NCBI RefSeq assembly: GCF_030144855.1 | Contig: NC_082725.1 | Coordinates: 30,814,001-30,878,000, forward strand | Source of the DNA: Hypanus sabinus | Taxonomy: Eukaryota | Direction: 5' to 3' | Length of the DNA stretch: 64,000 nucleotides | Part shown: positions 60,173 through 61,237 of the stretch, in pieces | How positions within the stretch are numbered: the first letter of the stretch is position 1 | How the letters are laid out: every line of letters begins with the position of its first letter | Notes under the pieces: model-generated | Databases searched by the model: none | What the model was told of the DNA's origin: nothing | The model's input: the letters and a program-made list of their open reading frames with translations, nothing else | Made by a program: the position numbers and the translations under genes

Positions 60173-61237
60173 ATGGAAGATAATCAATATTATCTATATT
60201 ATGAATATAATGAAAACACAACACTTCCCTTTAATTTACCAACTTTATTCTGTAATAATAGCAAAGTTATACATTTTAAGCGAGTTTATGTGCCCAGTTT
60301 ATATGCAATCATATTTGTGGCAGGGCTTCTAGGCAATTCTTTGGTCATTGTGGCAAAGGTCCTTTATGAGAAGCTAAAGAGCATGACAGATTTCTACATG
60401 TTGAATCTGGCGATTGCTGACTTGATGCTACTTTGCACTTTGCCGCTCTGGGCAGTAGATGCATATTATGGATGGACTTTTGGAACTTTTATGTGCAAAG
60501 TTGTAAATGGTGTTTATACTGTCAACCTCTATAGTTGTATGTTTATGCTTACCTGTGTGACCATTAACAGGTGTCATGCCATTACTCAAGCAACAAAAAT
60601 GCCTAAATATAAAATAATACATGGTATGTTTGTTTGTGGAGGGATTTGGGTTTTTGCTATCATTCTGTCTCTTCCAGAATTTCTATTAAGTGAAGCAAGT
60701 GCTGTAGAAACTGGTAAAGCTGTATGCCGTATGAACTATCCATCTGATTCAGACATCATCAAAGTAGGAGTCCACGTAACACAGATGGTGGTGGGATTTC
60801 TGATACCCTTTGTGACAATGATCATTTGCTACACGATCATTGCAAACAAACTGCTCCATGCCAAGGGCTTTCTGAAGGGTAAATCATTAAAGATTATAGT
60901 TGCAGTTGTAATTGTTTTCATGATTTGTGAACTCCCATTCAATGTTACAATTATGCTGCAAACTTTACAGATGGTCAGTGAAAAAAACAGGACTTGTGAA
61001 TTCCAGGCAAATCTAAAGCATGCAATTGTTATAACGGAGAGCATTGCCTATGTACATTGCTGTCTTAATCCTATACTGTATGTATTCATTGGAGTGAAGT
61101 TTAGAAACAATTTTTGGAAGATTTTAAAAGACGTTGGATGTATCAGTCAAAAGCAACTACATGTGCACCTGAAAACTGAGTACGAAACGACACAGCAACG
61201 ATCATGTCTAAGTGAAACGATGATGTCTCCTTTGTAA
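60173..61237 (+). CDS. CXCR6: Chemokine receptor, CXCR6-like (copy 3), 354 aa from ATG 60173
   Basis: Intact 7TM ORF with Tyr-rich N-terminus, KLKSMTD, CTLPLW, NRC, ITESIAYVHCCLNPILY. Splice acceptor TTTATTTCAG at 60128-60137. Paralogous to copy 1. Confidence 0.78.
   Translation: MEDNQYYLYYEYNENTTLPFNLPTLFCNNSKVIHFKRVYVPSLYAIIFVAGLLGNSLVIVAKVLYEKLKSMTDFYMLNLAIADLMLLCTLPLWAVDAYYGWTFGTFMCKVVNGVYTVNLYSCMFMLTCVTINRCHAITQATKMPKYKIIHGMFVCGGIWVFAIILSLPEFLLSEASAVETGKAVCRMNYPSDSDIIKVGVHVTQMVVGFLIPFVTMIICYTIIANKLLHAKGFLKGKSLKIIVAVVIVFMICELPFNVTIMLQTLQMVSEKNRTCEFQANLKHAIVITESIAYVHCCLNPILYVFIGVKFRNNFWKILKDVGCISQKQLHVHLKTEYETTQQRSCLSETMMSPL

Follow-up and report, generated by a model that had tools for sequence, protein, structure and literature searches.

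The third of three tandem receptor genes in a 64,000-nucleotide stretch of the Hypanus sabinus (Atlantic stingray) genome, hereafter the window, is a type-A co-orthologue of the chemokine receptor CXCR6 in which the DRY motif reads NRC. This gene, termed copy 3, is intact, under purifying selection and not decaying. Weighing the comparative evidence as a whole, we consider it probable that copy 3 encodes a functional receptor that acquired its NRC motif by stepwise inheritance, remains constrained and has kept its coupling in a lowered or re-biased form. In itself copy 3 is an ordinary immune receptor gene, already annotated, from a known family and at a locus that follows published logic. What had looked like a new decoy receptor becomes a set of dated DRY-motif steps in one receptor lineage, for which the neighbouring NRY paralogue and a dead copy provide internal controls. 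CXCR6 is the textbook example of a chemokine receptor that departs from DRY, and the cartilaginous fishes add an ancient NRY and, in stingrays, NRC to its motif range.

Organization of the receptor genes and features of copy 3

The window contains three tandem genes of the rhodopsin family (copies 1, 2 and 3), all on the forward strand (Table 1). These genes, including the open reading frame (ORF) of copy 2, lie on one 73.8-Mb chromosome of assembly GCA_030144855.1, in which copy 3 spans 1518 bp. The conserved ORF of copy 3 (60173–61237) is open from ATG to stop and encodes a seven-transmembrane (7TM) receptor of 354 residues with a Pfam 7tm_1 match of 3.8e-59. It combines a rhodopsin-family 7TM fold with the hallmarks of chemokine receptors, namely the extracellular cysteines linking the N-terminus to TM7 and TM3 to ECL2 (C27, C108, C185 and C275), the TxP motif (TLP, T89–P91), Glu7.39 (E289) in TM7 and NPxxY (NPILY, residues 299–303), so that the ORF is otherwise intact, as a preliminary description of this DNA had stated. 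The switch residues D2.50, R3.50, P5.50, Y5.58 and NPxxY are also unaltered, as is helix 8, and the Ser/Thr-rich C-terminal tail is conserved.

Nucleotides 60557–60595 of copy 3 encode VTINRCHAITQAT, in which the motif reads TINRCHAITQA. Only the Arg of DRY is retained, one step past NRY, and TM1 reads LVIVAKVLY where copy 1 has LVIVTLVLY; both observations had been made in the preliminary description and both stand. An AF2 model of moderate quality (pLDDT 68.6), which served for helix boundaries only, places TM1 at residues 30–66. The corresponding motif of copy 1 (protein XP_059801254.1) is SVNRYNFIV, with NRY at the DRY position.

Table 1 Features of the CXCR6 locus in the window.
Feature	Positions	Strand	Description	Basis
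Copy 1, type-B CXCR6 co-orthologue	31121–32402	+	Exon 1 31121–31129 (MTQ), exon 2 31329–32402	
Conversion tract, copy-2 side	54049–55213	+		Pairwise alignment with copy 3
Copy 2, CXCR6 type-A pseudogene	54060–55560	+		Lesions and dN/dS
Conversion tract, copy-3 side	59709–60872	+	Exon 1 to TM5/ICL3 border; includes K62 and NRC	
Copy 3 exon 1 (RefSeq model)	59720–59801	+	Upstream ATG, 82 nt of coding sequence, GTAAGT donor at 59802	tblastn and sequence
Copy 3 exon 2	60138–61237	+	Acceptor ...tttcag; conserved start Met at 60173, stop ends at 61237	
K62	60356–60358	+	AAG, position 1.57, near the cytoplasmic end of TM1, within LVIVAKVLY	
N132-R133-C134	60566–60574	+	AAC 60566–60568, AGG 60569–60571, TGT 60572–60574; positions 3.49–3.51, DRY equivalent	
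T138	60584–60586	+	ACT, position 3.55, one helical turn past C3.51	Codon table

In RefSeq, the Hypanus and Hemitrygon models begin at the upstream ATG in exon 1, which gives a Cys-containing N-terminal extension of 39 residues. This extension is not seen in the non-stingray orthologues, all of which use the Met equivalent to position 60173. Exon 1 of copy 3 sits within the conversion tract described below and is duplicated at 54060–54141.

At toggle-switch position 6.48 (ICELPFN) copy 3 carries a Glu (E253, 60929–60931), as does copy 1. Glu6.48 is found in nearly all elasmobranch CXCR6 sequences of both types, with Gln in Callorhinchus and tetrapod CXCR6 and Asn in Narcine type A. An acidic residue at this position, which adjoins the sodium pocket, is unusual and here is family-wide.

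Transposable elements lie between the receptor genes, among them a GC-rich (0.60) retroelement at 39880–43712 on the forward strand with DUF7041, RVT_1 and RNase H domains, and a fragment of a Tc1/mariner-type HTH transposase is located on the reverse strand just upstream of copy 1 (29679–30185). A block of 218 codons on the forward strand (36844–37497), conserved relative to the Pristis locus, was considered as a possible FYCO1 exon and rejected because its translation contains stop codons and is Cys/His-rich, resembling by eye the decayed C-terminal tail of a LINE ORF2; the block is present in the Pristis locus too. The ORFs around 18 kb of the window were uninformative as to FYCO1 exons.

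Copy 3 is a type-A co-orthologue of CXCR6

An exact look-up identified copy 3 as the C-terminal 354 residues of H. sabinus XP_059801253.1, annotated as "C-X-C chemokine receptor type 6-like". CXCR6 orthology in ~400 vertebrate genes has been defined by position between exons 14 and 15 of FYCO1, in a study that reported CXCR6 in the elephant shark and mentioned NRY as a species-specific variant of the receptor (10.1101/2024.09.20.614078, bioRxiv). The assembly gene table places the receptor genes of the window antisense inside a gene of 1,506 aa with RUN, FYVE and GOLD_2 domains (FYCO1), which is the antisense nesting in a FYCO1 intron that marks a CXCR6 orthologue. The same RUN/FYVE/GOLD_2 nesting was found in seven other chondrichthyan species (Hemitrygon, Pristis, Leucoraja, Narcine, Rhinoraja, Scyliorhinus and Mobula).

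In a maximum-likelihood (ML) tree of 45 proteins, from which bona fide CCR9, ACKR4 and CXCR4 sequences were absent, the chondrichthyan sequences formed a clade (100/99) that was sister to tetrapod CXCR6 (100/100). The joint CXCR6 clade (100/98) stood apart from CCR6, CCR7 and CCR10, and two CCR9-like sequences fell on the CCR6/7/10 side of the tree. The best PDB matches of copy 3 were CCR7, CCR9, CXCR4 and CCR6, whereas the match to ACKR3 was far weaker (7e-45 versus 5e-80 for CCR7). Copy 3 is accordingly placed with CXCR6 by the tree and shows no orthology to the ACKR1–4 gene families.

Elasmobranchs have two CXCR6 paralogues, type A with a short Tyr-rich N-terminus and type B with a first exon of three codons. 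Copies 2 and 3 are of type A and copy 1 is of type B. The A and B sequences of Heptranchias clustered with one another in the ML tree rather than by type, and the split between shark A and B sequences was weakly supported. This clustering suggests that the tandem paralogues have converted one another repeatedly, and not only over the tract found in this window. No type-A orthologue from Mobula was among the matches listed, and type B is annotated in both Mobula hypostoma and M. birostris; type A may have been lost in devil rays, and this paralogue is perhaps dispensable in some rays.

Copy 2 is a pseudogene that shares a conversion tract with copy 3

Copy 2 has gained a G at 55130 and has lost 21 bp after 55290 and 2 bp after 55542; it also has a Pro-to-Leu replacement in NPxxY at 55391 and a TAG codon at 55438–55440. 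Its truncated ORF of 236 aa (54513–55223) is a called gene in assembly GCA_030144855.1. Outside the conversion tract, in the 3′ part of the gene, dN/dS relative to Pristis was 0.91 for copy 2 and 0.31 for copy 3. Frame disruption or an omega of about 1, either of which denotes a pseudogene, was found in copy 2 and not in copy 3.

Pairwise alignment of the two copies revealed a tract with 9 differences in 1,165 bp (99.2% identical) that is sharply bounded by flanks of 80–90% identity. Within the tract, the copies differ by four amino acids and one frameshift. Copy 3 matches Hemitrygon at three of the four amino-acid differences, and the derived state at these sites, as well as the frameshift, lies on the copy-2 side, a polarity that fits conversion of the dead copy by the live one. 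Copy 2 is a dead duplicate, the 5′ two-thirds of which would have been recently overwritten by sequence from copy 3. The preliminary description had listed NRC and the TM1 Lys as features of copies 2 and 3. Both copies do carry them, but copy 2 is a pseudogene and has them because both fall inside the tract, so that the two copies count as one observation and not as two. Since NRC is also present in the intact orthologue of Hemitrygon, the pseudogene cannot be its source.

The duplicated unit extends upstream of copies 2 and 3, where 51349–53930 and 57501–58654 are 84–86% identical, which makes the duplication more than 5 kb long. The two upstream blocks of the window correspond to a single one in Pristis (L001 8412–9122).

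The motif changes differ in age

All chondrichthyan CXCR6 sequences examined, whether of type A or type B and with that of Callorhinchus among them, have Asn3.49, whereas most of the tetrapod CXCR6 sequences sampled keep Asp3.49. The six batoid type-A sequences (Hypanus, Hemitrygon, Pristis, Narcine, Leucoraja and Rhinoraja) all have Lys1.57; elsewhere this position is Tyr in shark type A and Callorhinchus, and Tyr, Leu or Phe in type B. Cys3.51, in contrast, was limited to Hypanus and Hemitrygon akajei among the sequences examined, and the same two species alone have Thr in place of Val3.55. The change at 3.51 is a single A>G transition (TAT to TGT), the other batoid type-A genes reading AAY AGG TAY, and that at 3.55 requires two nucleotide changes (GTT to ACT). 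In a structural model of CXCR6, residues 3.51 and 3.55 belong to one hydrophobic cluster at the lipid–cytosol interface, where Tyr3.51 normally forms a hydrogen bond with residue 3.56 (PMC5340378), so that the two stingray changes look like coupled local remodelling.

These distributions are consistent with a stepwise history, in which the replacement of Asp3.49 by Asn would have been fixed before the radiation of the living cartilaginous fishes and the TM1 Lys would date from the base of the batoids. The replacement of Tyr3.51 by Cys, together with that of Val3.55 by Thr, would have followed in dasyatid stingrays before Hypanus and Hemitrygon separated. Among the sequences compared, the pair C3.51 and T3.55 is the sole novelty of copy 3 relative to other rays, and it is older than the Hypanus–Hemitrygon split. 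In the literature searched, NRC with T3.55 in stingrays seems not to have been described.

Position 3.51 is known to vary in CXCR6: mammals, turtles and frogs have Phe, birds Leu and squamates Tyr, and Cys occurs in dasyatid stingrays and, apparently, in a skink. The skink sequence, a single predicted protein from Tiliqua scincoides (P0127), aligns as YRC at 3.49–3.51, with the Asp lost too, and it apparently acquired Cys3.51 independently of the stingrays, as a second case within the CXCR6 clade.

Copy 3 is under purifying selection

Selection on copy 3 was assessed with a codon alignment of 346 ungapped codons from a small set of sequences, five batoid type-A and two type-B genes, using our own implementation of a GY94 F3x4 branch model. 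The omega of the copy-3 branch was 0.53, which is no different from the background of 0.56 (p=0.83) and below 1 (p=0.008), in a test that spans the whole time since the Pristis split and not only the period after the Tyr-to-Cys change. A dN/dS near 1, which together with absent expression would have indicated a decaying gene according to the preliminary description, was therefore not found. The family-wide omega of 0.55 is fairly high, so the constraint is moderate. NG86 comparison of three taxa gave a dN/dS of 0.38–0.45 for the copy-3 branch. The stingray stem branch is long in the ML tree (0.21), but dS on the copy-3 branch was also raised (~0.20 versus 0.07 for Pristis by NG86), so the length reflects the overall rate and not protein change alone.

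For the period after Cys3.51 arose, the evidence consists of the protein replacements between Hypanus and Hemitrygon, which number 20 in addition to one 3-residue indel. Twelve of the replacements are located in the N-terminus or ECL2, and a further five are distributed over ICL2 (two), the tail (two) and ECL3 (one). The remaining three lie in helices, all in their outer thirds, although helices (AF2 limits) make up 67% of the protein (binomial 2.5e-6). Such a pattern is that of a working receptor with an evolving ligand interface, and not of decay. Purifying selection would have acted ever since the motif changes, with change mostly in the ligand-facing N-terminus and ECL2.

Predicted signalling of copy 3 and alternative explanations

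Experiments on the DRY motif of CXCR6 suggest how copy 3 may behave. Changing the DRF of human CXCR6 to DRY raises calcium flux and migration and leaves binding, internalisation and AKT signalling unchanged, and placing DRF in CX3CR1 lowers migration (PMC5340378). Chemokine receptors lose their coupling to G protein when Arg3.50 is neutralised (PMC3414077). By motif logic and by analogy, the copy 3 receptor would still bind a chemokine and would still engage Gi/o through Arg3.50, Tyr5.58 and NPxxY. Without the hydroxyl and ring of Tyr3.51, and with the 3.51/3.55 patch repacked at the lipid–cytosol interface, coupling is predicted to become less efficient or re-biased. A coupling weakened or re-biased in this manner would parallel that of mammalian CXCR6, in which DRF shifts the balance from calcium flux and chemotaxis towards adhesion and retention. 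We know of no receptor in which N3.49, C3.51, E6.48 and K1.57 have been tested together, and their combined effects could abolish coupling.

A bolder extension holds that CXCR6 residue 3.51 is a recurrent tuning knob, and that in stingrays NRC with V3.55T, on a background of E6.48 and K1.57, has turned type A into a receptor for adhesion and retention only, or one biased towards arrestin, while the NRY type B keeps chemotaxis. We regard this extension as speculative and unlikely; if true, types A and B would be a natural subfunctionalised pair. The natural allelic series could be used to probe how 3.49, 3.51 and 3.55 balance chemotaxis against adhesion.

The preliminary description took the altered DRYLAIV sequence as the mark of an atypical receptor and proposed that copy 3 may be an independently evolved decoy or atypical receptor. 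In a form that fits the ages of the changes, NRC and K1.57 would abolish G-protein coupling throughout the dasyatid type-A lineage, and the receptor would bind chemokine and internalise or present it through arrestin only. NRCHAIT retains three of the seven DRYLAIV positions, with both Asp and Tyr lost, the Ser/Thr-rich tail is conserved, and purifying selection fits a conserved decoy function equally well. Signalling CXCR6 itself, however, retains just four of the seven positions (Sus DRFIAVV), the mammalian receptor being DRF (PMC5340378), and both NRY receptors (M33 and R33) and DRC receptors (FPR1/2 and CMKLR1) signal through G proteins (PMC3414077, PMC11773488, PMC9680076), so that an altered DRYLAIV is not diagnostic in the CXCR6 lineage. 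Arg3.50, Y5.58 and NPxxY remain intact in copy 3, which falls in the CXCR6 clade and is unrelated to ACKR1–4. Its motif features are for the most part inherited lineage traits, with N3.49 occurring throughout the chondrichthyans, K1.57 throughout batoid type A and C3.51 also in H. akajei; the case for a newly evolved decoy is therefore weak, and independent evolution in copy 3 is unsupported. We thus judge loss of coupling in the dasyatid lineage to be improbable. A decoy role, if real, would be a trait of that lineage and not of copy 3 alone, and the motif itself is no argument for it.

Charge-neutralising substitutions at 3.49 often raise the basal activity of class A GPCRs, and a receptor with ligand-independent tone like that of some viral chemokine receptors, either constitutively active or basally internalising, might result if neutralisation of Asp3.49 removed the intrahelical Asp–Arg restraint and Cys3.51 further loosened the inactive state. 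Viral receptors with a variant first motif position are frequently constitutive, but changing NRY to DRY increased constitutive signalling in M33 and had no effect in R33, so Asn3.49 does not predict activation, and chemokine receptors are without the classical 6.30 ionic lock (PMC3414077). The stability of N3.49 across cartilaginous fishes fits a normally regulated receptor, and constitutive activity in copy 3 seems quite implausible. It is more implausible still that copy 3 is a gene in early decay, its ORF open and its function already lost after the Tyr-to-Cys change. The neighbouring duplicate is dead, the stingray stem branch is long and Mobula type A is absent among the matches listed, all of which would suit decay; yet two genera with the same motif have an intact ORF, omega matches the background and lies below 1, the replacements since the Hypanus–Hemitrygon split avoid helices, and the long branch is matched by an equally raised dS. 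A working CXCR6 receptor with lowered or re-biased coupling remains our preferred reading.

Comparison with known receptors

The atypical receptors ACKR1–4 and CCRL2 have a degenerate DRYLAIV in common with copy 3, which differs from them in not being orthologous, in keeping Arg3.50 and in having changed its motif stepwise within a lineage of signalling receptors. The combination of Cys3.51 with Arg3.50 occurs in FPR1, FPR2 and CMKLR1 (DRC), which are Gi-coupled; these receptors belong to another subfamily and, unlike copy 3, keep Asp3.49. Asn3.49 is likewise found in the chemokine-receptor-like 7TM proteins M33 and R33 of rodent cytomegaloviruses (NRY), which signal through G proteins with Arg3.50 essential, but these proteins are viral and constitutively active and keep Tyr3.51.

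Tetrapod CXCR6, with its DRF, DRY and DRL variants, shares with copy 3 the antisense position in a FYCO1 intron, membership of sister clades, a variable residue 3.51, TxP, E7.39, NPxLY and the C-terminal ...TSM(Y/F)xL tail. Copy 3 differs from it in having Asn rather than Asp at 3.49, Cys rather than Phe, Tyr or Leu at 3.51, Glu rather than Gln at 6.48, and Lys rather than Tyr or Phe at 1.57. The elasmobranch gene further differs from that of tetrapods in being duplicated into types A and B, to which H. sabinus adds an extra dead duplicate.
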